Notes: generated by a model not told the origin, from the sequence alone. Numbered from the stretch's first letter, positions 1,531-52,707 are shown. The stretch is 64,000 nucleotides of DNA from Phallusia mammillata (GCA_965637545.1 OZ281496.1:2790001-2854000), one strand, 5' to 3'. Numbers and translations are program-made.

Positions 1531-1960
1531 GTGGTGTAAAATACAAGTCAAAGCAGTTCTTCCTGCAGAAGCAGGTCGACTGTTGACAAACAAATACCAA
1601 CGTTAATAAGTAAACTAATAATGTAGTGTGTAGTTTATCGTGTTATTTGTTAAGCATGCAACTTTGCACAACTATAGAAGGTTTCCCAGCGAGATTCGTG
1701 CAGTCAAACATTGCACTTCATACTTATTTTACCAGTTAACACGCCTTTATCGAGTTACCAAACGAGCTTTTTACAGCCAACCATTTGATTCAAGCACTAC
1801 TTCAACCACATAAGTTCGGTTTCCTAACAAGCTTCGTGAATCTGCAAACGCTTAGCACTTAACACGATCGTACCGGGTCTAATTCTGAGTGACTTGGCAC
1901 GACAAAAGAAGCAATAAACAACATCAAACAAGCTTTTGTCATTGCAGATGATTTCTTCAT
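1531..1960 (-). pseudogene. Cys-rich secreted peptide, subfamily 1, copy A (exons 1-2 only)
   Basis: Exon 1 1960-1874 (87 nt) MKKSSAMTKACLMLFIASFVVPSHSELDP, GT donor. Exon 2 1579-1531 (49 nt) STCFCRKNCFDLYFTP, AG/GT. No exon 3 homologue found downstream in the window, and the usual upstream module is replaced. Confidence 0.7.
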
Positions 1961-2049
1961 ACTGATGCGTTTCAATCAGTCAAAGTTTTGGGCCTACACG
2001 GGTTTTTGTTGCTAGACACTGCAAAAAACAATATTAAATATAACGGATG

Positions 2050-2930
2050 AAGGTCACTTTGGTTCCGTAAATTCTCGGTGCTAACTCTGACTTTCGGGGT
2101 TTAAAAATCACTAAAGTCCACGACCTACCGAAACACTACCGAAAGAAAGACCGAAAACTTCCGGTTAGTCACGAACCCATGACGGCTGGAGCATTTTATT
2201 AATCTTGCGATCAGTCGTTAAAAATGGCGATTCGTGCCCAGCGCATTGCTAAGTATTTTTTGCGCGCACCTGCCGAGTTCGGCCGTGCGAATTCAACTGG
2301 GTATCTCTATGGACGTCGAATTATGACGAAATTGGGTAACTCCTTAACAATTCTATTTTCGGTGGAAAGGATTTTCACCGAACGGTAGTGCACCGTTGCT
2401 GTACAGTTGCTAGGGTGTCAACTTCGGATAAAACGAAGTCCAGGTTAAACGGTCAAGTGCGATATCTTATGAACCCATGGTTGAGCACCGCTGCAACTCG
2501 GCATCCGAGCTCGTGGCCCGGCCCCCGTTCTGGATAAAATAAAATTGCCACCAGGGCGCGCCATTTTGTTGGATTTTGCTTGCGGAAAAGGCTCGAAAAG
2601 TCCCTGTCGCTATGGCAACGGCCTGAAACCCTTGATTTCCGCTCCCCCGAAATTCCGGCCGCTAGGTGGCGCATCAGCAAATGGTTTTCCGGTGCCGATT
2701 CGGCCTTAGAAACTTGTTTTTCGCGTTTTTCAATTTTCCGCGAGTGGTCGCACGCGCGCCAGCCCGCCTTTGCGACGCCCCCCGGTAGACGTAGAGGATT
2801 AGAAAAAAAAACATTAGGCGAAACCGAATCGGGGAGGATTCGGGCGATATGTGGGATCAGCCCTGAACCGTCTGTGCAGACCAGCGATTGATCATTCCAA
2901 AAAATACTGACACAGAGTGTGAAGTCAAGT
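2050..2930. other. GC-richer insert of unknown origin between copies A and B
   Basis: Visibly higher GC than the flanks; it interrupts peptide-gene homology. No convincing ORF or terminal repeats identified. Confidence 0.35.
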
Positions 2931-3416
2931 TATTTTTTTAAATGAAACCTGAGCCCGAAAAACGCGGTCCGACTTACAACTTTGGGTTGATCTATGTAAT
3001 TAATTTTGAACGTTTTTACAACTGAAGCAAGGTTAGTATTACTCTGGGCGCCCTGTGTATTGTAGCGTGTCGTGCTGTACGTGGGTTTTGCCTAGAATTG
3101 TTGCAAGCCAAGTGCAATTGTTTTTACATGTTTTATTCGTTTTGCATAAATAGGACTGTTAGTGAAACCAACTTGTGGTCTCTATTTAGCTCTTTGGTTG
3201 TAAACCGTTATTACAGGGTTGGAGCGCTTTCCAAGATGGAGAGGCAGTTTTGTTATTGTACAGAATTATATATAAATGATCGAATGGAGCTTAACATCGC
3301 CGCACCTAAACTAATTTTAAACAAATTCCAAAAGCTGTCAAAACACTTTCGTAACATAACAACAAATGTAGAGGCTTATTCTATTACATCTTAAATGTGT
3401 GTTTTGCTTGTTGCTC

Positions 3417-3994
3417 CTAGTTCATCACAATTCCTTCTTGATCAAGATGATTGCAGCGCCCTTGAGTTTTGCAGACTAGGCAGTTGTCACGGACTGCAAT
3501 AAAAAACTACGTTATTTTCATCAAAATTACACTTTAAAATGTTGTGCTTTGTGGTTATGAAATTTACTTGGTAGGAATAGATAGTCAAAGCAGTCCTTCC
3601 TGCAGAAGCATCTCGGCTGTTGACAAAATAAATATCAACTTTAATTAGTAAACTAATAATGCAATGTGTAATTGATAGTGTCATTTGTTGAATGTACGAC
3701 AGACCTAAAGAAGGTTTCCTAGCGAGCTTCGTGCAGTCAAACATAGCGCTTGTTGCATAATTTACCACTTAACATGCTTTAGGCGGGGGTTTATTAACAA
3801 GCTTCGTGCACTTAACCATAGCCGTTCTTGCATACACTACTTTGACCACATAAGGCGTAAACCCTTCGTACATCTGCAACGGATTAGCACAACAAAATCG
3901 TACCGATCGAGGACAAACCCGAGTGACTTGGCAAGATCAACGAAGCAATAAACAACATCAAACAGGCTTTGGTCAGTGCAGATGACTTCTTCAC
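3417..3994 (-). pseudogene. Cys-rich secreted peptide, subfamily 1, copy B (GTG start, frameshifted exon 1)
   Basis: Exon 1 3994-3904 begins GTG and is 91 nt (others 87). Exon 2 3616-3568 PRCFCRKDCFDYLFLP and exon 3 3493-3417 IRDNCLVCKTQGRCNHLDQEGIVMN* are intact. Confidence 0.75.
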
Positions 3995-6198
3995 ACTGAT
4001 GCGTTTTCTTTGCAAGTTCTTGGTTGATCAATTATCTGTCGGTTTCTAAACGATATGAACATTTTAATATGAGAGGCTTTATCATAAGGGACATCTCTAG
4101 TCAAAACTGCAAACATGCGTAAAACAACAATTGTTGGGCAAAGCTGAAACCTAAGCATTTATGACTTCCACCAGTCGTTAATGATTTCCTGATGGCTGCG
4201 CATTGTCACGTTTAAGGTTTAGCCTGTTTGATAATATTAAATCCACTACTAGCAATGATTTGTAGCGTAAATGGTCAAGAAAAATATGGCCGACAAACAA
4301 TGACTTTAGACTTGTGATCTCTTTAACTTGTCACCTTTGCCAACAAACTTGTAAATCGTTGGCACAGAACCAACACATATTGTGGTAAATACTTGTGTGA
4401 GTAAAGGCGGTAGATAGTTAAGTTCCACAATTTATCCAAATAGTAGCAATTTCAGCTTGGATAATCATAGTTGTAACTAGGTACAAGCTTTTCGGGTCTT
4501 AATTTGAACAAAACTAGCCTGGCATCACACTCGGTTTACATACGTGTCGTAATTTCTCGGACATTCGGGGTTTGAAAATAAAAACCTTGACTAGGGACCA
4601 GGTTGAGTTTGGATGATACTTTCAGGTCCTCTTACAACTGCACATATACATACCAAATCACCAAGCTTAGTTAGGCAAGACGTTTTGGAATTCGTCATTA
4701 TTGACAGAAATAAAGTCAGTGCTACATAGAAATATTAAACCGAGTACTCTTTCGTGTTGATGTTTTGCACGGTTTTAATACACCCGTTTGTTTACGTCTA
4801 GAATTAATTAGAAAGTACAATTAGGTTCCACAACACGAAAGTAGATAATTAAGGAATTGGTTTTATTTATTTTATTATTTTTTCGTTAGAGGGTTGGTGA
4901 CTTCAACTTAGTACAACTTATTGTGTTCCACTGCGTTTAAGTTTGAATAAAACAGACTTGGATAGAAATTATACGCAAAATTTAAAGCAAGCAGTTTTTT
5001 TGCTGGCAAGCGCTAAACAATGTAAAAGTTTACGCTCAAAACCAAATGATTTCCTTGAAACTTACGGGACATTCAGGTTTCAATCAAAGATTCAAAAACT
5101 GCAAACAGGCAAAAAATGAAACCAAAATTGAAACCTAAGCATTTTCGACTTTCAGCGGTTCTCGGAGATCTTATAGTAGTTTAAAGAGTACTGTTTTAAA
5201 AATTATCACTAGGAAAGACTTGTAACATGTACGATTGAAACATGATAAAAATAGATCCTATAAGTTTTCACGTTAACTACCACAATAGCTTTACATGTAT
5301 TCACTATAATTTAATGTCATTGCTTGTAAAAATGCAAATTGTTGGCACAAAGTACGACACTGGTATTTAAAATACGAGTGCCCCTCGCACGGCAGTAAAA
5401 CAGTAGCTAGCTAGGTTTGTATTGTAATCTATATAATCCATAGACGTTAGTCAGATTGACTTCAGTTTGGATTTATGATGTTTGTTTTCATTTTACTATT
5501 TTTATGTTTGATTAATTATTATCGGTTTTTCTAAATAGTCTAGTTTTCAATTGGTCTGCCAGTTTGTATTATATTGTATGAAATTCGATACTGGACAAAA
5601 ACGGTAAAAATCAGTAGAAAACACTGTACAGGACTAGAAAGTTAGTTGTTTCTGTTTTTTATTTTTTAATCCAGTGTAATTATTTCTGATCATACGATTT
5701 TCTGTCGTTTTGTCTTTGTAATTTTTGTGTTGTGTTCTGCATATTTTTGATTTATTTTTGTTTGTCTATACGTCTGCGTTGGAACCTGTGGTACTCAGTA
5801 AATGATTGTTTTTGTTTCTTTCCATATCTATCCTGAGTCTGTTTATATTTGTATTTTACGAGTTGTTTTATGCATATGCGGTTTATCGGCGTACGAAAAC
5901 AAGGCGCCCATTAGTGAAACCAGCTTGTGGTCTTTCTTTGGCTTATGGGTGAGCCGTTATAGCAGGGTTCGGGTCGTTTATGAATTAGGGAGGCAGTTTT
6001 GGTTTAAGAAAGAATAAGGCAACAGTGGTCTTTTGGAATTTAACGTCGCCACTTAAAAGATATTTTAGCCGAATTCCCAAAGCTGCCGAAATAATTCCGT
6101 AACTTAACCACTCTGACATTTAGCATACATTCATTTCTACCAAATGTAAACAGTCACCTGTTTTATTACACCAAAAATACATGTTGTATATGTTGGTC

Positions 6199-6808
6199 CT
6201 ATTTGGTGTTTGTTTCCTCTTCATCTTTAGTCGGGCAACGTCCTTGATGTTTACAGCTTATGCAGTTGCTAAACACTGCAAAAAATCAACAATTTTGAAT
6301 TTAACAGATGATCAAAACCAAAATATTTAAAAAATTAGAAAAATTGATTTGTGGGTAAAAAGTTTGCTTACGGAGTGAAAATCCAAAATCAGCGCAGTTC
6401 TCTGTGCAGAAGCATCTTGTCTGTAAACACAATATAAACACCAACTTAATCACTAAACTAATAATCCAGTGCGTTTTTTGTCGTGTTGTTTGTTAAATGT
6501 ACGACTTTGCACACCTAAATAAAGGGTCCTAACGAGCTTCGTGCAATCATACATATCGCTTGTTACGTATTTTACAACTCAACACGCTTAAAGTGGTTTT
6601 CCTAACAAGCGTCGAGCGGTTAACCATAGACGTTATTACATACACTACTTTGACTAAATAAGGTCGGTTTTCAGACAAGCTTCGTGCATCTGTACAGGGT
6701 TTACACTTAACACAATTGTACCGGGTGTAAAGCTGAGTTCCTTGGCAAGACAAACGAAGCAATAAACAACATCAAACAAGCTTTGGACAATATGGATGAC
6801 TTCTTCAT
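6199..6808 (-). CDS. Cys-rich secreted peptide, subfamily 1, copy C (intact, 70 aa)
   Basis: Exons 6808-6722, 6420-6372, 6275-6199, all GT-AG, phases 0 and 1. Product MKKSSILSKACLMLFIASFVLPRNSALHPTRCFCTENCADFGFSLLFSNCISCKHQGRCPTKDEEETNTK*. Confidence 0.85.
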
Positions 6809-8100
6809 ACTGATGCGTTTTTCTTTGTAGGTTCTTAATTGATCAATTCGCTGTCGGTTTCTAAACGATATGAACATTTTTCACAGAAGAGGCTTTATCA
6901 TAAGGGACATCTCTAGTCAAAACTGCAAACATGCGCAAAACAACAATTGTTAGCAAAACTAAAACCTAGGCATTTTTGACTTCCACCAGTCGTTGCTGAT
7001 CTCCTGATGGCTTCGCATTCTTCTTGCTCATAAACAACTGATTTCCTTGAAACTTACGGGACATTCAGGTTTTAGTCAAATATTTAAAAACTGCAAACAC
7101 GCGAAAAAAATCATATCAAAAATGAAACCCAAGCATTTTTGACTTTCAGCAATCCTTGGTGATCACTTCCTGCTTCAGGTACAGTTTGTTAAAAAGCACT
7201 GCTTTAAAAATTATCACTATCAAATACTTGTAACGTATACGATTGAAACATGGTAAAATAGATCACGCAAGTTTTTCACCTAATAGCGATTTACATGTAT
7301 TCAGTTTAATTTAATGTCATTGCTTGCAAACAAAAACTGCAAACACGCGAAAAACAATAACAATTGGTTTCAAAAATGAAACCTAAGCATTTCTTACTTC
7401 TTCCAGTCGTTAGTGATAGCTTTTCAGCTGCATGTTCTCACATGTACGTTTTAGTCTATTTGATAATAAATTCACTACTATAGCAACGAATTATAACTTT
7501 TACGGTTAAAAAATGGCAAAAAAGGTCTGCAAATTATCATCCTAACCACCTTAATGACTTTTACAATGTGGTAACTTAAATTGTTATCCTTGCTTACAAA
7601 GTTGAAAAATGTTGTCACAGAGTACAGCAGTGAAATTTACCACATAGTAAGTACTCCCTTGTGGATATAGGAATAAGCATTAACGTCAACAGCACGAAGT
7701 TCATTAGGAAATCTGCTTAGGGCTTAAAAAGTCGTGCACGCTAAACTTTACAACCCTTAGCTGTTTAGTGAAAACCAATAATGTTCCACAACCATATTGT
7801 ATGTATAGCTATGTATACTATACAAAGGCCCTATTGTTCTGTAATTTCAAATTGTATAGTAATATTACGGGTTGTACTAAATACCGCATGTTACTGCACC
7901 GTTCTCTTCATTGTAGCACTCTACCATACAGAAACAATTGCATTGCATCCAGCGTAAAAGCTGTCTGCATTGACTTGACAGTAATAACACCAAGTAAGGT
8001 TTGATCGTTAAATGTAATTTCGTCATGTTAATGCGTTTTTATTAATAGTTGTTTAAACCGGATTGCATTTAGTCCGGTACAACTGTCAGTTTGAACATTT

Positions 8101-8460
8101 TCCCGCATGTGCAAGACAAGCCATTTCCCAAGAAGATGCGATAGCATGTCCACTGTAAACAGAATATAAACACCAACTTTAATCAGTAAACTAAAAATCT
8201 AGTATTTTGTCGTGTATTTTGTTAAATGTACGATTTTGCACCCCTAAAACGGGTTTCCTAACGAATTTCGTGCAGTCAACTGCAGCTACAGACACATATT
8301 TTCTAGCCCCTTTTTTCCTGACAAGCTTAATGCAGCCAACTATTGCTACAAGCACAAATGTGTTAGCCAAAAAGCCGGTAAACACTTTAGAATACCAAAT
8401 AAACAAACAAGTAGTATGTTGCGCAAAACCTACGTGGCTTGTAGCGATCCTTGTCAATGT
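8101..8460 (-). pseudogene. Remnant of subfamily 1 intron 1 and start of exon 2
   Basis: Homologous to intron 1 of copy C, including the acceptor gtttacag and a few exon-2-like bases (tggacatgctat). It then joins an inverted piece of the upstream module. No exon 1 or exon 3. Confidence 0.55.
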
Positions 8461-9754
8461 ACAATTACGTACGCTACTTGTGCTGGATTTTTTAACTCAG
8501 CATTCTCATTTTTAAACAATACTGTTTGCTTATTTATGTTACTAATTTAACAAATTTGTCGTTCAACTGATGTAATGCTAATAAATATGCAACCTTGTGG
8601 ACGAAACGCTTGTTCAGTATTTTCTATGTTTACTCTGTTATGTTTCAAGGTCTTAAATGTAGAAAAATATTTGGATGACGAAGCTAAAACCTTTTTTTTA
8701 TCTTGTAAGTTGAATGGGTTGCAGGTCAAGTTTATTTACTGCATTCTAATCATTTTTTGTCTTGTTCTTTGACCTTGCATTCAGTATGTAAATTATAATC
8801 AGTTTCTAAATTTAATGTGTAGCCAAAAATTTAACACAAAATTTTTCAATTTATTTTTATTTTTCTGAAATTATGAGCATCCAAAAGTGTCTTTTGTAGT
8901 CTCTGATGCTATTGCAACTCTTCTTGCAGCTGAAATAAAAAATAGCACGCAATATTCTACAACAAAAGCCAAAGTAACAAATCGTTTTTTGTCAAAATGC
9001 AACGAATTTTTTAAAGTAAAAGTGTGTGATCACAAATAAAATTATTGAGGTTCGATTTTTGACAATTTTCTCCATTAATTTTTCGAGATTGAAATTTTGC
9101 ACGTGGTTTTAATGTTTTATTGCCTGTGTAAATCCGAGTTGTTATTTAGATCGGGTTTAAGTTTGAACAAAAGAGTTAGTAAGGGCCTGAATTCACACTA
9201 GACTTTATTCGTGCCAGAATTTTGCCTTTACGGCTCAATTTGTTGTTTGAGTAAATTCTTTCATGAAAATGTGTACAGCAAATATAACGTGGTAACTCAC
9301 CAAGGCATTTACTCCACAGGCATTTCATCATCGATATTTTCAATCATTGCCTGTTCCAAAGCTGATTTTTCTTTCACTGGCACAAAAACAAACATTTCAA
9401 TTCAAACAAGACTAGAGATTTACTTTTTGTAACAAAAGTTAAAATATTTTCAATTTTGCAAAAAAAATGCATTACTTCTGAACAGTAAAAACGTTTTAAA
9501 GGTTGTTTCAGCGAAACACGTAAACATTTAAGACTTAAACATAACTTAAAAATACGAAACAAAATTACCTTGGTCTAGTTGACCACCCCTGAAAAAAGAA
9601 TACAAATGTCGGCATAGGGTATTTTATTCAGCCACAAACAAAACAGTTTCCTAATTATTTTGTACCAACCGAATTATACTAGCTATATACCAACACACAG
9701 TTGTGAAGATCTGTTTAACTGAACATATCAACTTGTCAACCAATCGTGGTGCAC

Positions 9755-9825
9755 AGAGTTGCAAGTCGGGCCGGACTTTTCGGGCCGGGTTTGGGTTCGG
9801 GCCGGGTTCGGGCCTAAGCTTTCCA
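9755..9825. repeat. (CGGGCCGGGTT)-type GC-rich interspersed repeat end
   Basis: cagagttgcaagtcgggccggacttttcgggccgggtttgggttcgggccgggttcgggcctaag; related pieces near 1458-1495, 2945-2985 and 56585-56645. Confidence 0.55.
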
Positions 9826-10020
9826 TTGCATCAAATATTTACTGGGCTACTTCAAAAAAGCAAACAAACAACTTACATGAAGTAGTTGCCAAATGCAAGC
9901 GTGTGGCGTAAAAATCTTGCTTCTGTGCTGGCCAAACACAAAGTAGCAACCAGAAGAATAGACAGACACAGATTGTTCATGATGACAGTTAGCTTGTTGA
10001 AGTTGAAAACTCACTGTGCA

Positions 10021-10263
10021 CACTGTTTCGACCTATAAGGTTTTATCTGTGCAACTGGTGACAAAAGATAGGTCATGTTAGCTAGTATGATCATCCAACG
10101 GTACTCCAGTTTGCCACAACTGGGCATAAACCACAAAGGAAACTGGATCACAATGGCCAAGCAACTGCTTGGGAACTGAAGTGAAGTTGGCTCTGTGCCA
10201 TTGGATGGCTATACTATCTCTCGTCACCAGTTGCACAGATAAGACCTTATAGTTCGAAACAGT
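10021..10263. mobile_element. MITE-like element with about 50-bp terminal inverted repeats
   Basis: 10021-10071 (cactgtttcgacctataaggttttatctgtgcaactggtgacaaaagatag) is the near reverse complement of 10214-10263; non-coding interior. Confidence 0.7.
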
Positions 10264-10371
10264 TCATACTGTGTGCAGCTTGTTGTACCTTTATTTAATT
10301 GGGACCTTTCGACACGGACCTAAAAGTAAACCTGATAAAAACTCGTCGATATTTGCTTTGTGGGTATCGCA

Positions 10372-10777
10372 CTAATGACACCCCAAAGTCAGCGCAGTTT
10401 TCGATGCAGAAGCATGGCGTCTGTTAGCACCAACTTTTATTAGTAAACTAATAATCCAAAGTGTATTTTGTTGTGTACTTCGTTAAATGTACGACCTTGC
10501 AAATCTAAAAATGGTTACCAATCAGGCTTTATGCAGTCAACCATAAATACAGGCACAAAATAATTATCTCAACAGCGAGTTTTTGTCTACCAAGCTTGCA
10601 CAATTAACTATAGCTATAGACACAAATAACAAGACTAATAAGCTTTGCGCATTCATTCATAGATACAAGCGTAAAACACTTCTTTGACCCATAAGGCCGC
10701 TCTGAATGACCTGACAAGACAAAAGCAATAATAAACAGCCACTAACATGCTTTGGTCATTGCAGATAATTTCTTCAA
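10372..10777 (-). pseudogene. Cys-rich secreted peptide, subfamily 1, copy D
   Basis: Start mutated to TTG (10777-10775), in-frame TAG after KAC, exon 1 donor lost. Exon 2 from 10420 reads TPCFCIENCADFGVSL with a damaged donor. No exon 3. Confidence 0.75.
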
Positions 10778-11219
10778 ACTGTTTTTATGCGAATTCCCGG
10801 TTGATCAAATTCGCTGTCGCATTCTAAGCGATATGAACATTTATCATATCAGGGGCTTCAGCTTCGTAAGGGATATTTCAAGTCAAAAACTGCAAACACG
10901 CGAAAAACAACAACAATTGTTAGCAAAACTGAAACCTAAGCATTTTTGATTTCCACCAGTCGTTACTGATTTCCTGATTGCTTCGCACTGCTACATGTAA
11001 GGTTTAGTCTGTTTGATAATAAATCCACTACTAGCTACGGTTTGTAACGTAATTGGTTAAAACATGGTAAAATAGGTCTGACAACGTTTCACCTTAACTA
11101 CTATCATCTACAACTTCGCAATCATCACAGTTGTAAGAGATACATATTTTTTAGGTTAGTTTTGTGATTTAATTTCAACAAACACTCATATATAAATTAT
11201 TGTGCGCCAAGCCCGTTGA

Positions 11220-11520
11220 GCGCGTAATAGCTAATCAAGCCGGTGTCCCAAACATTCGCAATTGGCAGGGCACAAAGAAAAATCTATCCTGCGGTCGAAC
11301 TGGCGATCCCCAACTACGAAGCTGACATGTACGGTGTACAAGGCAGACAACGGTGCTTGTGATTCGACTTGCGGCGGTTTCTCCGCGGTGCCTGTGCAGC
11401 TCGGTTGGTAGAGCGCGAGTCCCGGCCAGACTCTTGTTGTAGGTTCGAATTCCAGTACAGGCCAGATGTTTCTAGTCCGTGCCTTGCCATATGGGAATGC
11501 TTGACGTGCCTTGCCATATG
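11220..11520. mobile_element. tRNA-derived palindromic element (degenerate copy)
   Basis: tRNA-like unit on + at about 11390-11460 (gcctgtgcagctcggttggtagagcgcgagtcccggccagactc...ggttcgaattcc...aggc) with its tail, and an inverted tail at 11220-11295. Same family as 53016-53376. Confidence 0.65.
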
Positions 11521-11619
11521 GGAATAATTCGGTATGGTACCCTCAATGGGTCTGACGTACTATGATTTACAAACGAGCATGCTATGATCGCTTGTCAGCA
11601 TGACCGCTTCAGGGTCGAC

Positions 11620-11778
11620 CCCAGTATGAATGTATTTATTTTGCAGCATACAAGGCAGGCAACGGTGCTTTTAAATCGACTTTTGGCGGGTTCACCACTG
11701 GCTCAGTTGGTCCATGAAAGACTCCTGGCGTGGGTTCGAATCCCACCCACGTGTCTTGTCATATGGGAAAGCCTGGCG
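11620..11778 (+). mobile_element. tRNA-derived element, right half
   Basis: ggctcagttgg...gggttcgaatcccacc followed by a tail ending gcctggcgtac. Confidence 0.55.
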
Positions 11779-12260
11779 TACCGTAAAGAGTAAAGTACCG
11801 TCAACTAAAATCATGGTGTGGAGCTGTTTTGTCATTTTTTTCCAAAGCCTAATAAATAATCAACAAATGTTCGTCACTGTTCACAAGATGACAAAACAAT
11901 GACAAAACGGTTCTGACACTATGGGAAGCAAAATGCTTGATAGGCTGAAATCACAAAATTTTATAGAAAGGCAAGCACAGCGATTGTTATGAACTTTATA
12001 ATTACTATTTTCCGAAATAAAAAAACTCAACATCTCAGAAGAAATTGTTGAATGTGAATATTTAGTATTTAAGTAGCTTCAATTTTCCTGGAATTTTGGG
12101 TCAATCGCAATCGATATGTACGACCTTGTTAGTTTGAAGCTGACAAGCTTTGTACAGTCAAGCATATACGTTGTTACTAGTACTACTTCGACCGCAAAAG
12201 AATGGTGTCCCAGCAAGATTTTTTTTATCTGCAAAGTATTAGCAGTTAACACAATTTAAC

Positions 12261-12347
12261 CTGTGCTGTAGCTGAATGACTTGACAAGACAAAGACAACA
12301 ATAAACAACATCAAACATGCTTTGGACATTACTGATGATTTCTTCAT
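12261..12347 (-). pseudogene. Cys-rich secreted peptide, subfamily 1, copy E (exon 1 only)
   Basis: 87-nt exon MKKSSVMSKACLMLFIVVFVLSSHSATAQ with GT donor and upstream module. Intron 1 homology ends near 12110; it has no exon 2 or 3 of its own. Confidence 0.7.
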
Positions 12348-13284
12348 ACTGCTTTCTTTGCAGATTCTTGGTTGATCAACTCTCTGTCGGCTTCTAAACG
12401 ATATGAACATTTCCCATATGGGCGCTGCAGCAAAACAGATATATTATTGCAAAAACTGCAAACACGCGTAAAACAACAACATTTGATATCAAAAATGAAA
12501 CCTAAGCATTTCTGACTTCCTCCAGTTGCAGATAATTTCTTTATACGGATGCGATTTTTTGCAGGTTTTTAGTTGATCAGTTGGCATTCGCCTTCTGAAC
12601 GATACGAACATTTCCCATATGCGCAAAACGGGTTGGCTTTTTAATGAATGGGATATCCGGTCATTTGTAGCAGGTTGCAAAACTGCAAACAGACCAATCA
12701 AATAAATTGATGTCAAAACAGAAACCTGCTTGATTTGTAACAATAGCCGCATCACACTGAAAATATCACCGTTTTTGCCATATAATAACAGATAAACTGT
12801 GTTTTGCCTTTTCATCATTTATCAAACGCAATGTCGTTAATTTAGTGGCCCAAAAGCAATTGCACATTTAAAGCGTTCATTAAGTGCAAATGTCGCTGTT
12901 ACAGATTTCTATGGTTTGTTTCTTGTACTGTAAGTGTATCAGCAAGACAAAAAAGTTCGTCACTGGTCACAGATAGACTGCCGAGGTTATAAAGAATGTG
13001 CCAAACGGTTTGGCCACTATGCAAAGCTAAAGACTTCTTAAGCTGAAATCAATTTGAAGAAAAGCAAGTGATTGTTACAAAATATCTAAATTGCTATTTT
13101 CCGAAATAAAAGCAACTAACAACCCATGCAACTAATGCAATTGTGTCGCTATGTTTTCTTTCACCAAGCGAAATAAACTTAACCTAGCTCAGCTCAACTC
13201 AGTTACTCTGATACCTAAAAAATAATCATTTCCACCAACAAATTTCCTTTATTGCTGCTTTAGTGCATATTTTATTTGTTGGTT

Positions 13285-13751
13285 CTATTTGGTGTTTGTT
13301 TGCTCTTGATCTTTGGAACCGCAGAGCCCTCGGGCTTTACAGGTCAGGCAGTTTTGGGCCACTAGAAAAACATTTTTGTTAGAAAAACTAATGATCCAAT
13401 GTTTTTTTAAATGTACGACTTTACACACCTAAAGCATATTTCCTAACAAACTTCATGTTGACAACCATGACTACGGGCACGAATTTACCAGCCAAAAAGC
13501 AGGTTTCCTAACGAGCTTTGTGGAGTCAAACACGGTGCTTGTTATATGCACAACCTTGTAAGCTCCTTACAAGATTCGTACGGTCCGGCATATACGCTGC
13601 TATAAGCACTACTTGCCTGCAAAAGAGTAATGTATCTGCAAAGTAGCAGTTATCACAATTGTACCTGCGCTGTAGCTGAATGACTTGACAAGACAAAGAC
13701 AACAATTAACAACATCAAACATGCTTTGTACATTACTGATGATTTCTTCAT
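13285..13751 (-). pseudogene. Cys-rich secreted peptide, subfamily 1, copy F (exon 2 deleted)
   Basis: Exon 1 13751-13665 MKKSSVMYKACLMLLIVVFVLSSHSATAQ and exon 3 13361-13285 (x)AQNCLTCKARGLCGSKDQEQTNTK* are intact. Intron 1 joins the end of intron 2 directly, so phase 0 to phase 1 splicing gives ...AQWPKTA*. Confidence 0.75.
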
Positions 13752-14847
13752 ACTATTTTCTGAGCAGATGCCTGGTTAATCAAATCGTTACCGCCTTCTA
13801 AACGATATGAACATTTCCCATTTGAGCACAAGGGATATCTTTAGTCAAAAACTGCAAACACGCGAAAAACAACAACAGTTGATATCAAAAATTAAACCTA
13901 AGCATTTCTGACTTCCTCCAGTTGTAAGTGATAGCTTCATAGCTACATGTTTCCACATGTAAGGTCCTGTCTATTTGATAGTAATTTAACTACTAGCAGC
14001 GAATTGTAAATTCTACGGCTAAAACATGTAAATATGCCGGACAAATTATCACCTTAACTACCTCAATGACTTTTACGATGTGATAACTTAAATTGTTATC
14101 CTTGCTTACAAAGTTGAAAAATGTTGGTACAGCGTACAGCTACAGTGAAACTTACCACATATTATAGTTACTACTCGCATGTGGGTATAGTCGTGCAAAG
14201 AATAAGCAGTAACGTCAACAGCACGAAATTCATTAGAATATCCGTTTTAGGCTTGCAAAGTCGTGCACGCAAAAACTGTACAATCCTTAGCTGTATAGTA
14301 AAAACCTACCGTGTTCCACACCCATATTACATGGCTATGAATACTAAATACAGCCCTATTTACTTCTGTAGTCTTAAAGTGTATGGTAGCATTAAGGGTT
14401 GCACTAAATATCGCATGGTACCACACCGTTCTTCTTAATGTACCACCCTTACCCTATAAAAACCTACAATCTAACCAGGGCAAAAGCTGTCCGATTTGAA
14501 ATGACAATAACAGTATCAAGTAAGTTTTGATCGTTGAAGGTGATTACCAATTGTTTAAACCAGATTGCATTTAGTCTAGGTAGAATAGTCAGTACATTAC
14601 TATCTTTACATGGTGTAAACATTTCCCGTGTGTGCAAAACAAGAATAGACTAAACCTTTCATGTGGGAACGTGCAGCTATGAATCCATCACTTACGACTG
14701 GAGGAAGTCAAAATGCTTAGATTTCATTTTTGATGATAATCGTTGTTTTTCGCGTGTTTGCAGTTTTTTGTTCAAAGACATATGGGAAATGTTTGTATCG
14801 ATAGAAGCCGACAGAGCTGATCAACCAAGAATCTGCACAGAAACATT

Positions 14848-15487
14848 ATGAGAAATCATCAGTAATGTCCAAAACATGTTTGATGTTGTTTATTGTTGCC
14901 TTTGTCTTGCCATTCAGCTACAGCACAGGTTAAATTGTGCTAACTGCTAATACTTTGCAGATACATAAATTTTTCTGTCTTTTGCGGTCAAAGTAGTGCT
15001 TAACAACGTATATGCTTGACTGTACGAAGCTTGTAAGGAAATTAGCCTTAAGCTTACAAGTTTGTGCAAGTAACAAACGCAACGGTTGACAACACAAAGC
15101 TCGTTAGGAAACCTGTTTTTTGACTTGTAAATTCGTGCCCGTGGTCATGGTTGACTGCATGAGTTTGTTAGGGAACCCGCTTTAGGCGTGCACATCGTAC
15201 ATTTGACAAAACACTGGATTATTAGTTCACTAATTAAAGTTGATGTTTGTATTGTGTTTACAGTACTGGCCATGCTACTGCGCCAAGAATTGCGCTGAAT
15301 TTGGATTCACAATAAGTAAGCCAATTTCTTACCCACAAAACACTATTTTACGTTTTTAAAGTTGTTGGTTTTGATCATCCGTTAAATTCAAAATTGTTCA
15401 TTTTTTTGCAGTGTTTAGCAACTGCCTAAGCTGTAAAGCTCAGTACGTTGTGGGACTAAAGATGAAAAACAAACAATCACCAAATAG
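14848..15487 (+). pseudogene. Cys-rich secreted peptide, subfamily 1, copy G (frameshifts)
   Basis: ATG AGA AAT CAT CAG TAA (1-nt loss), a 5-nt loss later in exon 1, exon 2 15264-15315 YWPCYCAKNCAEFGFTI, and a 1-nt loss in exon 3 (starts 15412) that removes Cys6 from the frame. Confidence 0.75.
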
Positions 15488-15660
15488 AACCAACAAATAA
15501 AACTTGTGTTTTGGTGTAACAAAATTCACAGTTCACTGTTTTCGGTTCGTAGAAATCAGAGTGGTTAAGTTACGGAATTATTTCAGCAGATTTGGGAATT
15601 CGAACAGATCTTTCAGGGGGCGACAAAACAATATACTTCATTCTTGCTGTAGTGCTGTAA

Positions 15661-15869: not shown

Positions 15870-17610
15870 GTAATTTCTTAGTGACTCTATATACTACGCT
15901 GTATGTTTGAAATGAATGACGACGCAGGATTAAAGATCTTGAGAAAGTCGTTTACGGAAGTAATAAACGTGATTCTACTGAAAAAGCAGTCTGCTGTATG
16001 ATTTCTATACTTGAGGCTGTTAACACATAGATGGCATCAGGTTGTATGTATTGAAATATTGAAAAAAAGTTTCAAATGTTTGCGAAACAATTTAAAACGC
16101 AACAAGCTAAAGGACCATTAAATAAAATTAAATCAAATTCATAATGCATTAAAAGTGTTTTTGTTTGTTTTGTTCAAACAACAAAACAATACGCCCCTAG
16201 GATTTCAGGTTGTACACAAAAGATAAGTTTCCGTTTATTGTTTTGATTTACAGCAAATCACAATAGTATTTCAATAGAATTAGGAATTCATTTTCTTGTG
16301 GATCGATTTGGTCGCCCCCAGAGTTTGTAGACAGGGCCAGACCAGGTGTAGCAGAATCCACGCCTTCTGCAGAATATGCACAACCATTTTCCTGTACAAT
16401 ACAATAATGTGCAAGATAGTCGGAAAAAAGACTGACACAAAAATCGATCATCTGTTCAAAATATGAAAAAAGGGAAATAAGTAAAATCACGAAAAACTGA
16501 AGAAATTTTTGTCCATCAGACAAAAAATCAAACCAACATAAGACTAAGAAAACAAGTGCAGTTACACACATATTAACTTACTACAAAAAGAGAAACATAG
16601 AATACAAAAACAACACAAACAAAAAAGGGGCAGAAAGCACACTGACAGGCCAACGCCATAGCAACAGAAATAAAACATGCAAATTTAAGAAAAATGTATG
16701 AGAACACAAAACCTGACAAGCAATACGGTTCTCTTTACCAAATATTGATAAGTTGGTGGAGCAATTACGGCGACAATACCTTTTGCAATACCAAGGTCTT
16801 CTTGCCTAAAAAACACATTTTCAGTGCTGTATACTACTGTATACAATCGCATTAATAACTTATTAAAAAAACTGTACAACTACATTTTTAACATAAAGAC
16901 AAAAACAACAACTTACCATTGTAACACTTACACACAGAAATAACAGAAACAGGACAACCAGTTTCATTGCTTCTTTCCTATTACGTCTTTGTACTTACTA
17001 TAGTGTATAGATCTTGCTGGATCTTTATAATATATACAAACATCTTAATAGCATCGTATACGGAAGTCTTGAACGTGAACCTACTCATTTCATTCACTAA
17101 AAATCGTGCACGATAAAACATGTGACAAAATCAAGTGTGGGCTACGATTTCTATACGTGTCGCTTTTTTCGATTTCTATGGAATGATTTGTGCATGTACA
17201 TTACTTTCGCAATTCAGGTTATTAAAAGTCTAGTACTTGGTGTATGAAATGTCGGATGGAATAACTCAAAAATATTAAATTGTTGAAAACGTTCAAAGCT
17301 AATGGAGTAATTGGAACACTTACCAACAGATTTTAATTTCAGTTTTCAAATGGTAAAAGTCATTAAGTTAAGATGAAAAATTGTCAGGCCTGTTTACAAT
17401 GTTTTAACCGTAATAGTTACAATTCGTTGCTAGTAGTGAATTTACTATCAAATAGACTAAACCTTACATGTGGAAAAATGTTGCTATAAAGCTATCACTG
17501 ACGACTGGAGGAAGTTAGAAATGCTTAGGTTTCATTTTTGATATCAATTGTTGTTGTATTTCGCGTGTTTGCAGTTTTTCCCTCACATAAGAAATGTTCT
17601 TATCGTAAGG
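15870..17610 (+). repeat. Segmental duplication block, direct copy of about 46520-48320
   Basis: Near-identical sequence throughout, covering a subfamily 2 gene and a subfamily 1 upstream module. Homology breaks at about 17608. Confidence 0.85.
16288..16967 (-). CDS. Cationic Cys-rich secreted peptide, subfamily 2, copy K (73 aa; putative antimicrobial)
   Basis: Exons 16967-16917, 16805-16739, 16391-16288, GT-AG, phases 0 and 1. Product MKLVVLFLLFLCVSVTMARRPWYCKRYCRRNCSTNLSIFGKWLCIFCRRRGFCYTWSGPVYKLWGRPNRSTRK*. After the signal: 11 R + 4 K, no D/E, 4 W. TATA-like tattataaaag about 60 nt upstream. Confidence 0.88.
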
Positions 17611-45773: not shown

Positions 45774-46331
45774 ATGAAGAAATCATCAGTAATGTCCAAA
45801 GCATGCTTGATGTTGTTTATTGTTGCCTTTGTCTTGCCAAGTTATTCAGCTACAGCACAGGTATAGTTGTGTTAACTGCTAATACTTTGGAGATACATAA
45901 CTTTTGCTGGGACACCAGTCTTTTGTGGTCTTAGTGCTAGTAACCCTGTGCTTGACTGTACGATGTATGTAATGAAACCCGCTTCAAGCTTTCAATGTCG
46001 TGCATGTAACAAAACACACGACAAAACTGGATACGGGACTATTGATACACTGGATTGGACACTGGATTATTAATTTCTTGATTAAAGTTGGTGTTTATAA
46101 TGTGTTTACAGACAAACTGCTATTGCGCAGAGAATTGCGCTGACTTTGGATTGACACCAAGTAAGCAAATTTCTTAACCACGAAACACTATTTTACTTTT
46201 TAAAATTTTGGGTTTTGATCATCCATTAAATTCAAAATTGTTCATTTTTTGCAGTGTTTAGCAACTGTCTAATGTGTAAAGCTCAAGGGCGTTGCGGTCC
46301 TCAAGATGAAAAGCAAACAAACACAAAATAA
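45774..46331 (+). CDS. Cys-rich secreted peptide, subfamily 1, copy H (intact, 70 aa)
   Basis: Exons 45774-45860, 46112-46160, 46255-46331. Product MKKSSVMSKACLMLFIVAFVLPSYSATAQTNCYCAENCADFGLTPMFSNCLMCKAQGRCGPQDEKQTNTK*; AATAAA a few nt after the stop. Confidence 0.88.
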
Positions 46332-46519
46332 AACCAATAAATAAAATGTGTTTTGGGTGTAATAAAACACAGATGACTGTTTACAGTTTGTAGAAATAAA
46401 AGTATGCTAAATGTCAGGGTGGATGAGTTACAGAATTATTGCAGCAGATTTGGGAATTCTGCTAAAAGATCTTTCAAGTGGCGACAAAACAATAGGCTTC
46501 ATTCGTGCTGTAAGTAATA

Positions 46520-48320
46520 TCTTAGTGACTGTATATACTCCGCTGTATGTATGAAATGAATGACAACGCAGGGGCAAAGATCTTGAGAAAGTCGTTTACG
46601 GAAGTGTTAAACGTGATTATACTAATTTTGTCCATAAAAGACAAAAAAAACTTGTTGAAAAACAATTTGCTGTATGATTTCTATACTTGAGGCTGTTAAC
46701 GCATAGATGGCACCAGGTTATATGTAATGAAATATTGAAAAAAGTTTGAAATGTTTGCGAAACAATTGAAAACGCATTAAGCTAAATTAAATGAAATTAA
46801 ATAAAATTCATAATGCAATAAAAGTGTTTTTTTTTGCTCGTCTGTTTAGTTAAAACAACACAACAGTGCACCCCTAGCATTTCAGGTTGTACACAAAAGA
46901 TAAGTTTCCGTTTATTGTTTTGGTTTACAGCTAATCACAATAGTATTTCAATGTAATTAGGAATTCATTTTCCTTTCAATCGATTTGGTCGTCCCCAGGG
47001 TTTGTAGACAGGGCCAGACCAGGTGTAGCAGAATCCACGCCTTCTGCAGAATATGCACAACCATTTTCCTGTACAATACAATAATGTGCAAGATAGTCGG
47101 AAAAAAGACTGACACAAAATCGATCATCTGTTCAAAATATGAAAAAAGAGAAATAAGTAAAATCACGAAAAACTGAAGAAATTTTTGCCCATCAGACAAA
47201 AAATCAAACCAACATAAGACTAAGAAAACAAGTGCAGTTACACACATATTAACTTACTACAAAAAGAGAAACATAGAATACAAAAACAACACAAACAAAA
47301 AAGGGGCAGAAAGTACACTGATAGGACAACGCCATAGCAACAGAAATAAAACATGCAAATTTAAGTAAAATGTATGGGAACACAAAACCTGACAAGCAAT
47401 ACGGTTCTATTTACCAAATATTGACAAGTTGGTGGAGCAATTACGGCGACAATACCTTTTGCAATACCAAGGTCTTCTTGCCTAAAAATCACATTTTCAA
47501 TGCTGTATACTACTGTATACAATCGCATTAATAACTTATTAAAAAAAAACTGTACAACTACATTTTTAACATAAAGACAAAAACAACAACTTACCATTGT
47601 AACACTTACACACAGAAATAACAGAAACAGGACAACCAGTTTCATTGCTTCTTTCCTATTACGTCTTTGTACTTACTATAGTGTGTAGATCTTGCAGGAT
47701 CTTTATAATATATACAAACATCTTAATAGCATCGTATACGGAAGTCTTAAACGTGAACCTACTCATTTCATTCACTAAAAATCGTGCACGATAAAACATG
47801 TGACAATCAAGTGTGAGCTATGATTTCTATACATGTCGCTTTTTTCGATTTCTATAGAATGATTTGTGCATGTACATTACTTTCGCAATTCAGGTTATTA
47901 AAAGTCTAGTACTTGGTGTATGAAATGTCGGATGGAATAACTCAAAAAATGTTAAATTGTTCAAAACGTTCAAAGCTGCTGGAGTAATTGGAACACTTAC
48001 CAACAGTTTTCAACTTTGTAGGCAAGGATAGCAATTTCAGTTATCAAATGGTAAAAGTCATTAAGTTAAAATGAAAATTTGTCAGGCATGTTTACAATGT
48101 TTTACGAGTTACAATTCGTTGCTAGTAGTGAATTCACTATCAAATAGACTAAACCTTACATGTGGAAACATGTTGCTATGAAGCAATCACTGACGACTGG
48201 AGGAAGGCAGAAATGCTTAGGTTTCGTTTTTGATATCAATTGTTGTTGTATTTCGCGTGTTTGGAATTTTTTCTATCAAGATATCCCTTATGCTAGAGCC
48301 CTCACATAAGAAATGTTCTT
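46520..48320 (+). repeat. Segmental duplication block, direct copy of about 15870-17610
   Basis: Near-identical sequence; here the module continues into exon 1 of copy I. Confidence 0.85.
46965..47645 (-). CDS. Cationic Cys-rich secreted peptide, subfamily 2, copy L (73 aa)
   Basis: Exons 47645-47595, 47481-47415, 47068-46965. Product MKLVVLFLLFLCVSVTMARRPWYCKRYCRRNCSTNLSIFGKWLCIFCRRRGFCYTWSGPVYKPWGRPNRLKGK*. Confidence 0.88.
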
Positions 48321-48376
48321 GTCGTATAAAGGCCAACAGCGAATTTGATTAACAAGGAATTTGCAAAGAAAACATT

Positions 48377-48451
48377 ATGCAGAAATCCAAAATATGTTTG
48401 ATGTTGTTTATTGTTGCCTTTGTCTTGACAAGTCAGTCAGCTACAGCAAAA
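48377..48451 (+). pseudogene. Cys-rich secreted peptide, subfamily 1, copy I (exon 1 only)
   Basis: 75-nt exon MQKSKICLMLFIVAFVLTSQSATAK (12-nt in-frame loss) with a phase-0 GT donor; intron 1 is truncated after about 40 nt. Confidence 0.65.
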
Positions 48452-49410
48452 GTAATATTGTGTTAACTGCTAATACTTTGCAGATGCGTGGACAAAAAAA
48501 GGTTAAGAACCGCTGCTTTAAAGCTTCGTGAAAAAATAGCTTGTTTTGCCCTTACAGGAACTGTTCGAACCATGTAAAAGCTGGCAGTGCACTGACCATT
48601 ATACCTAGACTTAAATGCAATCTGGCTTAAACAACAAGTAATGAAAACGCATTAACATGACGAAATCACCATCAACGGTCGAAACCTACTGAATGTTCTC
48701 ATATCTAGTCAAACAGCTTTTGCACTGATAAGAATGTATTTTTTTTCTGTAGGGCATTTATTACCAACCGTAATATTACCACACACATTGGGATTACAGA
48801 ACTAAATAGTCCTTTTTTACAGTATTCATAGCTATACAATATGGGTGTGGAACACGGTTGGTTTTTACTAACAACTAAGGATTGTAAAGTTTTGCGTGCA
48901 CGACTTTGCAAGCCGAAAACGGATTTCCTAGCGAATTTCGTGCTGCAGACTGCTTACATTCCGTACACGACTATATCCACACGCGAGTAGTGACCATAAT
49001 ATGTTGTAAACTGCACTGCGTTGTACTCTGTGTCAACATTTTTCAACTTTGTAAGCAAGGATAGCAATTTAAGTTACACATGGTAAAAGTCATTAGTTAA
49101 GGTGAAAATTTCTCGGGCATATTTGCAATGTTTTTCCGCAAAGTTACAATTCGTTGCTATGCAGTGAAATTATGTATCAAATAGACTAAACCTCACATGT
49201 GGAAACATGTTGCTATGAAGCTATCACTAACGACTGGAGGAAGTCAGAAATGCTTTGGTTTCATTTTTGATATCAATTGTTGTTGTTTTTCGCGTTTTTG
49301 CAGTTTTGTTTAAAGACATCCGTTTTGCGAAAGCCCCCATATGGGAAATGTTCATATCGTTTAGAAGCCGACAGAGAGTTGATTAACCAATAATCTGCAA
49401 AGAAAATAGT

Positions 49411-50214
49411 ATGAAGAAATCATCTGCAATGACCAAAGCTTGTTTGATGTTGTTTATTGCTGCTTTTGTCTTGTCAAGTCATTCAGCTACAGCACAGGTA
49501 AAGTTGTGTGAACTGCTAACACTTTGGAGATACATACACCAGTCTTTTGTGGTCTTAGTGCTAGTAACCCTATGCTTGACTGTACAAAGCATGTAAGGAA
49601 ACCCGCTTTAAGCTTTCAATGTCGTGCATGTAATAAGCGCTATGGTTGACTGCACGAAGTATGTATAAGGAAAACCGCATTAAGCTTTTAAGTCGTGTAT
49701 GTAACAAGCGCTATATGGTTGACTGCACGAAGCTTATTAGGAAACCCGCTTGCAAAGTCATGCATGTAACAAGCGCTATGGTTGACAGCACAAAGCTCGT
49801 TAGGAAACCTGCTTTTTGGCTGGTAAATTCCTACGCGTAGTCATGGTTAACTGCATGACGTTTGTTAGGAAATCTGCTTTAGGTGTGCAAAGTCGTACAT
49901 TTAACGAAACACACGACAAAACTGGACACGGGAGTATTGATACACTGGATTGGACACTGGATTATTAATGTTTTGATTAAATTTGGTGTTTATATTCTGT
50001 TTACAGACAAACTGCTATTGCGCTGACTTTGGATTGACACCAAGTAAGCAAATTTCTTAACCACGAAACACTATTTTACTTTTTAAAATTTTGGGTTTTG
50101 ATCATCCGTTAAATTCAAAATTGTTCATTTTTTGCAGTGTTTAGCAACTGTCTAATGTGTAAAGCTCAAGGGCGTTGCGGTCCTCAAGATGAAAAGCAAA
50201 CAAACACAAAATAA
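49411..50214 (+). CDS. Cys-rich secreted peptide, subfamily 1, copy J (66 aa, five Cys in the mature region)
   Basis: Exons 49411-49497, 50007-50043, 50138-50214. Product MKKSSAMTKACLMLFIAAFVLSSHSATAQTNCYCADFGLTPMFSNCLMCKAQGRCGPQDEKQTNTK*; a 12-nt in-frame deletion removes AENC. Confidence 0.8.
49575..49885 (+). repeat. Degenerate minisatellite (about 60-70-bp unit, about 5 copies) in intron 1 of copy J
   Basis: Repeated tggttgactgcacgaagc..gttaggaaacccgc core; copy number differs among paralogues (about 1 in H). Confidence 0.7.
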
Positions 50215-51925: not shown

Positions 51926-52707
51926 ATGAAGCCTATTGTTTTACTTCTGTTACTTTTGTGTGTGAGTATGACAATGGTAAGTTGTTGTTTTTTTGTTGTA
52001 GCCAAATCACCAATTATGATTGTACTTTAAAATAAAAAATAACACTTTTTGCAGGCAAATAGACCATGGTATTGCAAACGCTATTGTCGACGCTATTGCT
52101 CCAGCAACACTTACTCATTTGGTAAATATAACTGTTTTTACTATCCGTTTGTTTTTGTGTTTGTCCTTGTATTTTATCTTTCGATTGTCAACCTGCAAAA
52201 TGGTGTATTTTGAAGATTTTTTGTTTGTTTCTGAAACATCAATATATCCTGTTTTGTGGGCTGTTTATTTTATTAAAAGTTTTGTGATAATTGTTTTAAT
52301 TATATTTTTGTTAATTAAGATTGTTTGTTTTTGCTTATCTGCAATTTGTCTGTTTGTCATTACTATTGTCTTTCTAACTGTCCATTTACATGCCATTAAT
52401 AATAATAATGTTTTAAAAGCGATTGTTTGCTTGTGCTTCCTTTCGAATTTTTGCGTTGTCATTAAATTGTTATTTCGACCATACATGTGTGTATATTCAC
52501 CAGTCTTATTGTTTTGTTTGTTGTTTGTTTTTCGCACAATTTTGCGTGTCATTTTTTCTATTCATATACCAGCTTATACCATATTATTTTTGTTGTACAG
52601 GTAAAATACTGTGCACATTTTGTAAGAGGCACAGATTCTGCTACACATATTCCGGTTCTGTCTTCACGGCGAGAAGAAGACGCATCAAGCCCACGAAAAG
52701 AGGATAA
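51926..52707 (+). CDS. Cationic Cys-rich secreted peptide, subfamily 2, copy M (74 aa)
   Basis: Exons 51926-51976, 52055-52121, 52601-52707. Product MKPIVLLLLLLCVSMTMANRPWYCKRYCRRYCSSNTYSFGKILCTFCKRHRFCYTYSGSVFTARRRRIKPTKRG*; 11 R + 5 K, no D/E, terminal Gly. Confidence 0.88.

Follow-up and report, generated by a model that had tools for sequence, protein, structure and literature searches.

The first cysteine-rich cationic antimicrobial peptides (AMPs) to be isolated from tunicates were turgencins A and B, reported in 2020 from the ascidian Synoicum turgens. They are cationic, amidated peptides of 35-36 amino acids (aa) with six non-adjacent cysteines in the pattern C-x3-C-x4-C-x7/8-C-x2-C-x3-C, joined by a ladder of disulfides (C1-C6/C2-C5/C3-C4) and showing helix-loop-helix tendencies by nuclear magnetic resonance, and their genes are still uncharacterised (PMC7024374). 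Here we analyse a small gene, K, on the minus strand of a 64,000-nucleotide (nt) stretch of the Phallusia mammillata genome (the window; C3:2790001-2854000 of a 240-Mb, 312-contig assembly, to which all whole-genome counts refer). K encodes a putatively secreted six-cysteine peptide of strong positive charge; it has two cationic paralogues, L and M, and is interspersed among genes for charge-neutral six-cysteine peptides that we call S1. We judge K, L and M to be a new family of a kind, cysteine-rich cationic secreted peptides, that is already known. Our favoured reading, held tentatively and at somewhat less than an even chance, is that K is a secreted host-defence (antimicrobial) effector.

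Reading and translating the minus strand across 16288-16967 revealed a compact three-exon gene with GT/AG introns (Table 1), apparently unannotated, in AT-rich eukaryotic DNA (~36% GC across the window). The spliced coding sequence (CDS) of 222 nt specifies a 73-aa precursor with a predicted signal of 17-18 aa and a peptide of 55-56 aa. The initial annotation had proposed a post-signal peptide for this locus, and its sequence matches exactly the part of the spliced translation that follows a hydrophobic leader of 17 aa. Under the -3/-1 rule the signal may be cleaved after Ala18 (between A and R in T-M-A-R) rather than at the exon boundary, which would leave a 55-aa peptide of the same charge. 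The peptide contains 15 Lys and Arg residues and no Asp or Glu (net charge +15), four Trp and six Cys, in full agreement with the earlier counts, as well as four Tyr and three Phe; 20% of its residues are aromatic. Its calculated isoelectric point is 10.9, and its calculated mass with three disulfides is ~6.95 kDa (monoisotopic 6945.5 Da when it starts at Ala18, or 6874.4 Da when Ala18 is removed with the signal). The six-cysteine pattern that had been claimed for K proved to be C-x3-C-x3-C-x11-C-x2-C-x5-C.

Three cationic K-type loci are present in the whole genome, and all of them (K, L and M) are intact and lie inside the window. The three have kept the reading frame, exon structure, splice signals and all six cysteines. 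Between K and the more distant paralogue M, exons are 62-79% identical whereas introns, at ~53%, are at the level of a forced or random alignment. The Nei-Gojobori ratio of nonsynonymous to synonymous substitution rates (dN/dS) for this pair is 0.18, with a dS of ~1.1 (Fisher p = 2e-6); by part it is 0.11 in the signal and 0.17 in the cysteine core. Because dN/dS is this low while the introns have diverged to random-alignment level, the K coding sequence is under purifying selection and, judged by such evolutionary criteria, K is a real gene. A segment after Cys6, F-C-Y-T-x-S-G-x-V, is also conserved between K and M.

A duplication of 1.6 kb (15979-17579 versus 46656-48271, 93% identity) includes K and L, and the L protein differs from K at four tail residues and nowhere else, ending in ...GK. 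Within the core there is one synonymous change in 174 nt, whereas the introns have 13 in 460 nt; the core proteins are identical. In the tail (the last 15 codons), by contrast, there are six changes in 48 nt, four of which alter an amino acid, and this rate exceeds that of the introns (p = 0.005). Four of the six changes are clustered and could represent one mutational event; omega in the K/L tail is ~1. In these comparisons the cationic peptides evolve fastest in their C-terminal tail. A further variant of the tail is present in one of two DNA sequencing runs that contain the locus: the allele of K in run X2 carries 16296 T>C (R72G), so that the protein ends in ...TGK where the reference ends in ...TRK. 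This L-like Gly-Lys C-terminus implies that the tail also varies within the species, and it is either a segregating polymorphism or the product of K/L gene conversion. Both X1 and X2 depart from the assembly at 16439 and 16473 (a 1-nt deletion and a single-nucleotide polymorphism (SNP) in intron 2) and at 17018 (a SNP in the promoter region). These differences, all outside coding sequence, are strain variation or small assembly errors.

The S1 genes, which encode charge-neutral six-cysteine secreted peptides, number about ten copies in the window. They span positions 1531-15500 and 45774-50214, and their mixture of intact and broken copies fits a birth-and-death pattern. In the best intact copy the signal exon specifies 29 aa and the peptide is 41 aa long. 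A peptide profile of exon 3 detected ~12 loci genome-wide, eight of them in the window; those outside lie ~29 kb upstream, elsewhere on contig C3 and on C4, with a weak, broken S1-like locus on C8. All superfamily loci found outside the window by this genome-wide profile are S1-like, and none is cationic. An intact-looking S1-type gene is present at C4:8658900-8662000 (minus strand), with C-F-C-R-K-D-C in exon 2 and N-C-L-D-C-T-H-Q-G-R-C in exon 3. The presence of an S1-type gene on C4 implies that the neutral subfamily is dispersed, whereas the cationic one is confined to the window.

S1 and K genes have the same organisation, with three coding exons and intron phases 0 and 1, and are physically interleaved in one cluster. 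In both, the second intron splits the eighth codon of an 11-residue loop between Cys3 and Cys4, the spacing from Cys2 to Cys6 is identical, and [KR]-x-x-G-x-C follows the C-x2-C. They differ at the N terminus, where S1 begins with C-x-C and K with C-x3-C, and in the signal exon (29 aa in S1, 17 aa in K). S1 peptides also have a net charge of -1 to +1, no Trp and a short acidic or polar tail, whereas the tail of K is aromatic and basic. An eight-row alignment of S1 with K, L and M has six invariant cysteine columns, and K-S1 similarity beyond the cysteines is modest (score 49 versus a null of 29.8 +/- 7.7 with cysteines fixed, p = 0.02). An alignment of S1 with K by MAFFT, made from few sequences, introduced a one-cysteine shift and a four-residue gap and was rejected; the gap-free alignment is preferred because it keeps both the cysteine spacing and the intron position.

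By gene structure, cysteine spacing and residue similarity, K, L, M and S1 can be grouped in one local superfamily of six-cysteine secreted peptides. The simplest reading would be that the cationic lineage is derived from the neutral cluster. Local duplication among the neutral six-cysteine genes would then have produced K, L and M; their lineage would afterwards have become extremely basic, and it would have gained two residues between Cys1 and Cys2 and an aromatic-plus-basic C-terminal extension. That they are the founders of a tunicate-specific host-defence family, with a disulfide fold of its own reached by charge reversal, or neofunctionalisation, of a neutral six-cysteine family, is a broader proposal that we regard as doubtful. 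As a separate observation, a ~245-bp repeat at 17335-17579 of the window recurs next to S1 genes there. Dispersed S1-like loci on C3 and C8 also have a copy, either adjoining them or 1-4 kb upstream. The repeat could be a regulatory or mobile element that members of the family share and that has moved with them.

Table 1. Coordinates of K, of its cationic paralogues and of S1 genes, counted from the first letter of the window.
Feature	Position	Strand	Description
TATAAA box of K	17024..17029	-	62 nt upstream of K ATG; identical in L
K exon 1, coding part	16917..16967	-	ATG and 16 mostly hydrophobic codons; donor GTAAGT; phase 0
K intron 1	16806..16916	-	111 nt; GT...AG; 3' end TTTTTAG
K exon 2	16739..16805	-	67 nt; N-terminal half of peptide with Cys1-3 (C-x3-C-x3-C); donor GTAAAG; ends in phase 1
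K intron 2	16392..16738	-	347 nt; GT...AG; 3' end TTGTACAG
K exon 3, coding part and TGA stop	16288..16391	-	Cys4-6 (C-x2-C-x5-C), aromatic segment, basic C-terminal tail
AATAAA polyadenylation signal of K	16234..16239	-	49 nt past K stop
Paralogue L	46965..47645	-	recent duplicate; CDS 96.8% and introns 96.5-97.4% identical to K
Paralogue M	51926..52707	+	protein 60% identical to K; exon structure and Cys spacing as in K; net charge +16; ends in ...KRG
S1, best intact gene	45774..46331	+	three exons, phases 0 and 1; C-x-C-x3-C-x11-C-x2-C-x5-C
S1 exon 3, intact	3417-3493		
S1 exon 3, intact	6199-6275		
S1 exon 3, intact	13285-13361		
S1 exon 3, intact	46255-46331		
S1 exon 3, intact	50138-50214		
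S1, broken	15411-15484		frameshifted exon 3
S1, broken	~10703-10777		stop in signal exon
S1, broken	~50013-50039		4-codon deletion in exon 2

A predicted secreted, disulfide-rich, Trp/Arg-rich peptide with a charge of +15 is a reasonable and plausible antimicrobial candidate, and from its sequence we infer secretion, disulfide formation, a fold and an antimicrobial role. After signal cleavage, the K peptide would act as the effector, its Arg and Lys residues binding anionic microbial surfaces and its Trp, Tyr and Phe residues anchoring in the membrane interface. A disulfide-braced core around the C-x2-C helix would keep the peptide stable in sea water, blood or tunic, and the variable C-terminal tail could tune potency or processing.

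Precedent for such an effector comes by analogy from the turgencins, cationic six-cysteine AMPs of similar layout made by ascidians (PMC7024374). Turgencins and K share an ascidian source, positive charge, a partly helical structure (for K, in a weak model) and six non-adjacent cysteines, of which the N-terminal half includes a C-x3-C pair and the C-terminal half a C-x2-C. Turgencin A and K also have in common the short strings C-K-x-x-C-[KR] and G-x-W-x-C-x-x-C, and the C-termini of L (...GK) and M (...KRG) are of a type that may be amidated, as those of turgencins are, whereas K itself has no terminal Gly. Unlike turgencins, K has cysteine spacings of x3, x3, x11, x2 and x5, lacks the motifs CxMAC and KKxGG, is 20 residues longer and is far more basic (+15), being rich in Arg and Trp rather than Lys.

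If K, L and M are indeed the founders of a tunicate-specific host-defence family, theirs would be the first cysteine-rich cationic AMP family of tunicates to be described at the gene level. The gene cluster would be a tractable model from the invertebrates most closely related to vertebrates. Neutral members that keep the disulfide scaffold, beside a derived subfamily of charge +15 to +16 with a fast-evolving tail, would illustrate, as a case study, the possible origin of an immune effector from a non-cationic secreted peptide. An active K would represent a new salt-water-adapted, disulfide-stabilised Arg/Trp-rich scaffold; if K is unexpressed or inactive, it is one more orphan small-peptide gene.

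Several observations weigh against an antimicrobial role for K. High cationic charge alone also fits toxins, binders of glycans or nucleic acids, and signalling ligands, and the ancestral role of the fold was probably not membrane attack, because the sister subfamily S1 is charge-neutral. No homology of K to any tested AMP was found. With cysteines fixed, similarity between K and turgencins is not significant (p = 0.08-0.09 for turgencin A, 0.7 for B); membership of the turgencin family, given this result together with the different spacing and the missing motifs, is unsupported, and the resemblance is at best one of kind. The K protein is absent from public predicted-protein sets. K and L have two or three N-glycosylation sequons, whose use, if it occurs, would be atypical of an AMP, and M has none. 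Structural models are of low confidence, with a predicted local distance difference test (pLDDT) score of 57.5 for an AlphaFold2 model of mature K built on a four-row alignment and 60.4 for a single-sequence AlphaFold2 model of S1. Lastly, twelve runs under the species label that we guessed to be RNA (X3-X14) contain almost none of the index words of the K locus, and no reads from two of them, X3 and X8, mapped to it.

Two read-index searches, one with the whole K locus and one with exon 3 and the 3' untranslated region, found the locus in X1 and X2 only, both from a single study. Contigs from these runs on 15950-17250 run through both introns without joints, which is the behaviour of genomic DNA and gives no evidence of a transcript. 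The lack of RNA support in the runs examined would suit a K that is not currently working: a young, silent or decaying duplicate whose frame is open only because the K/L duplication is recent. The birth-and-death character of the surrounding cluster, with its several broken S1 copies, fits this explanation, as do K/L tail differences that are at least neutral in rate (omega ~1). Against it, not only K and L but also the much older M (dS > 1) is intact, with conserved splice sites and cysteines at a dN/dS of 0.18; the cores of K and L have fewer changes than their introns; and the promoter and polyadenylation signals of K are intact. The guessed-RNA runs are small and may miss adult immune tissue, and if they are embryonic, an adult immune effector would not be expected among them. 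We consider a silent K very unlikely.

The initial annotation had further noted in K a motif matching a levomeric gamma-core pattern and a cysteine spacing that would suit a disulfide-stapled helical hairpin. The levomeric-2 gamma-core formula is C-x3-9-GxC (PMC9820530), and the C-x3-G-x-C at Cys30-Cys36 of K does fit it. The formula is likewise present in L and S1 but absent from M, in which Arg replaces the Gly, and shuffles of K with cysteines fixed yield the levomeric-2 isoform in 23% of cases and any isoform in 52%. Given these shuffle rates and the loss of the Gly in M, the match is at the level that chance would give. Nor do the low-confidence models of K and S1 contain strands that would form a beta-hairpin at this segment; the adjacent C-x2-C region is helical in both models.

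As to the hairpin, the K model has one helix at residues 5-12 with Cys1 and Cys2 and a second at residues 21-32 with Cys4 and Cys5 (hydrophobic moments 0.62 and 0.49, respectively), followed by a disordered tail (40-56). An equivalent helix covers the C-x2-C in the S1 model. This helix is the sole element that recurs in the K and S1 models, and its 10-residue block is the most confident in each (~72). Two predicted cysteine-bearing helices are compatible with the proposed hairpin, which has its basis in a low-confidence model and for which no structural match emerged: a Foldseek search of the K model against the PDB gave none, and the exhaustive structural aligner VIA-align wide returned generic helix-turn-helix domains at a best Z of 3.0, a meaningless level. 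The disulfide connectivity cannot be read from models with pLDDT values of 57.5 and 60.4; the ladder C1-C6/C2-C5/C3-C4 and the arrangement C1-C6/C2-C4/C3-C5 are both geometrically conceivable. Plant alpha-hairpinins and CS-alpha/alpha toxins resemble K in having two helices (predicted in K) and cysteines one turn apart. They differ from it in their twin C-x3-C motif, the second of which is C-x2-C in K, and in a core of four rather than six cysteines, and no sequence or structural match of K to helical-hairpin disulfide peptides was found.

Searches for relatives of K were negative throughout. A protein word index of 5.8 billion clusters gave no match for K or for the S1 precursor, not even the query itself, and a HMMER profile of K, L and M gave 0 matches at E <= 0.001 against 1.84 billion protein representatives. 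An ESM Atlas search with the exon-3 peptide yielded no usable match, and a literature search for an ascidian or Phallusia peptide family of this kind returned nothing relevant. The absence of relatives is no proof of orphan status, because short peptides limit the power of such searches and small spliced genes often go unpredicted. In Pfam K matched only CarbpepA_inh, at noise level (E = 1.1, 9.6 bits versus a cut-off of 25), and in the PDB the best hit was 2hlg (E = 0.028), followed by two antibody chains, none of them convincing. The best matches in both databases point to the same sub-threshold candidate, the PF02977 knottin metallocarboxypeptidase inhibitors and the tomato fruit-specific protein 2hlg. 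The latter shares with K a C-x3-C, 11 residues and a C-x2-C, as well as the string G-x-W/L-hydrophobic-C-x-x-C. K lacks the third knottin cysteine, located midway along the 11-residue stretch, and has an extra N-terminal cysteine instead, and the proteins are from a plant and a tunicate; with this set of cysteines the cystine-knot connectivity cannot match, so the likeness is a resemblance only and assignment of K to PF02977 was rejected. The St-CRP peptides, from the same animal as the turgencins, have a CC-C-C-CC pattern and are unrelated to K.

Toxins and ligands commonly use a scaffold of small helical peptides with C-x3-C motifs and disulfide bracing. K could be a bioactive secreted peptide that targets cells of its own animal or other animals instead of microbes: a toxin-like deterrent, an antifouling agent, a ligand of ion channels or an endogenous signalling ligand. 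Neutral S1 shares the scaffold without the charge, and the conservation of F-C-Y-T-x-S-G-x-V between K and M suggests a specific surface and not bulk charge alone. L and M, moreover, have Gly-containing C-termini of the amidation type that is seen in many neuropeptides and toxins, and K and L bracket three tandem copies of an adhesion G-protein-coupled receptor (GPCR) gene. Yet no similarity of K to toxin or hormone families was found in Pfam, PDB, HMMER profile or structure searches, and a charge of +15 without acidic residues is far beyond that of typical receptor ligands. Adjacency to receptor genes alone is weak evidence, and the position of K and L beside them is explained by segmental duplication of a unit of S1 plus cationic gene. 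That K, L and M are ligands of the flanking receptors is speculative, and we consider a toxin-like or signalling function in general unlikely. The three receptor gene copies occupy window positions 17637-44750; they are ~9.4 kb each and 88-95% identical, and each has open frames with a GPS motif (PF01825) and a 7tm_2 domain (PF00002).

A further possibility is that K is a secreted polycation with a structural or storage role, whose target is not the membrane but a polyanionic or metal substrate such as tunic cellulose, sulfated glycans, nucleic acids or, as in a vanabin, vanadium. Vanabins are disulfide-bonded helical proteins that are basic and rich in Cys, and the vanabin genes in this genome fit a vanadium-accumulating ascidian lineage; a peptide with 20% aromatic residues and many Arg would also suit carbohydrate stacking. 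However, the architecture of vanabins, with 18 Cys in ~90 aa, is unlike that of K, and in Pfam K has no match to Vanabin-2 (PF11437) at E <= 10 and none to a carbohydrate-binding family. Genome-wide, PF11437 has five loci, all on C1 and none on C3, the contig that includes the window, and the idea that K is itself a vanabin was rejected on the absence of a PF11437 match and the location of the vanabin loci on another contig. No positive evidence for any such ligand of K was found, and we rate a binding role lowest, as highly improbable; an antimicrobial host-defence effector is still the reading that we favour.

Two observations elsewhere in the genome are consistent with a tunicate, and more precisely an ascidian, as the host. 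The five Vanabin-2 (PF11437) matches are arranged in tandem at C1:24529897-24544553, which fits a vanadium-accumulating ascidian. A GH6 domain is present at C3:28480812-28481030; its score is 26.7 bits, or 29.9 when the in-frame neighbours are included, and the cut-off is 27. GH6 in an animal genome is the hallmark of the cellulose synthase that tunicates acquired horizontally.

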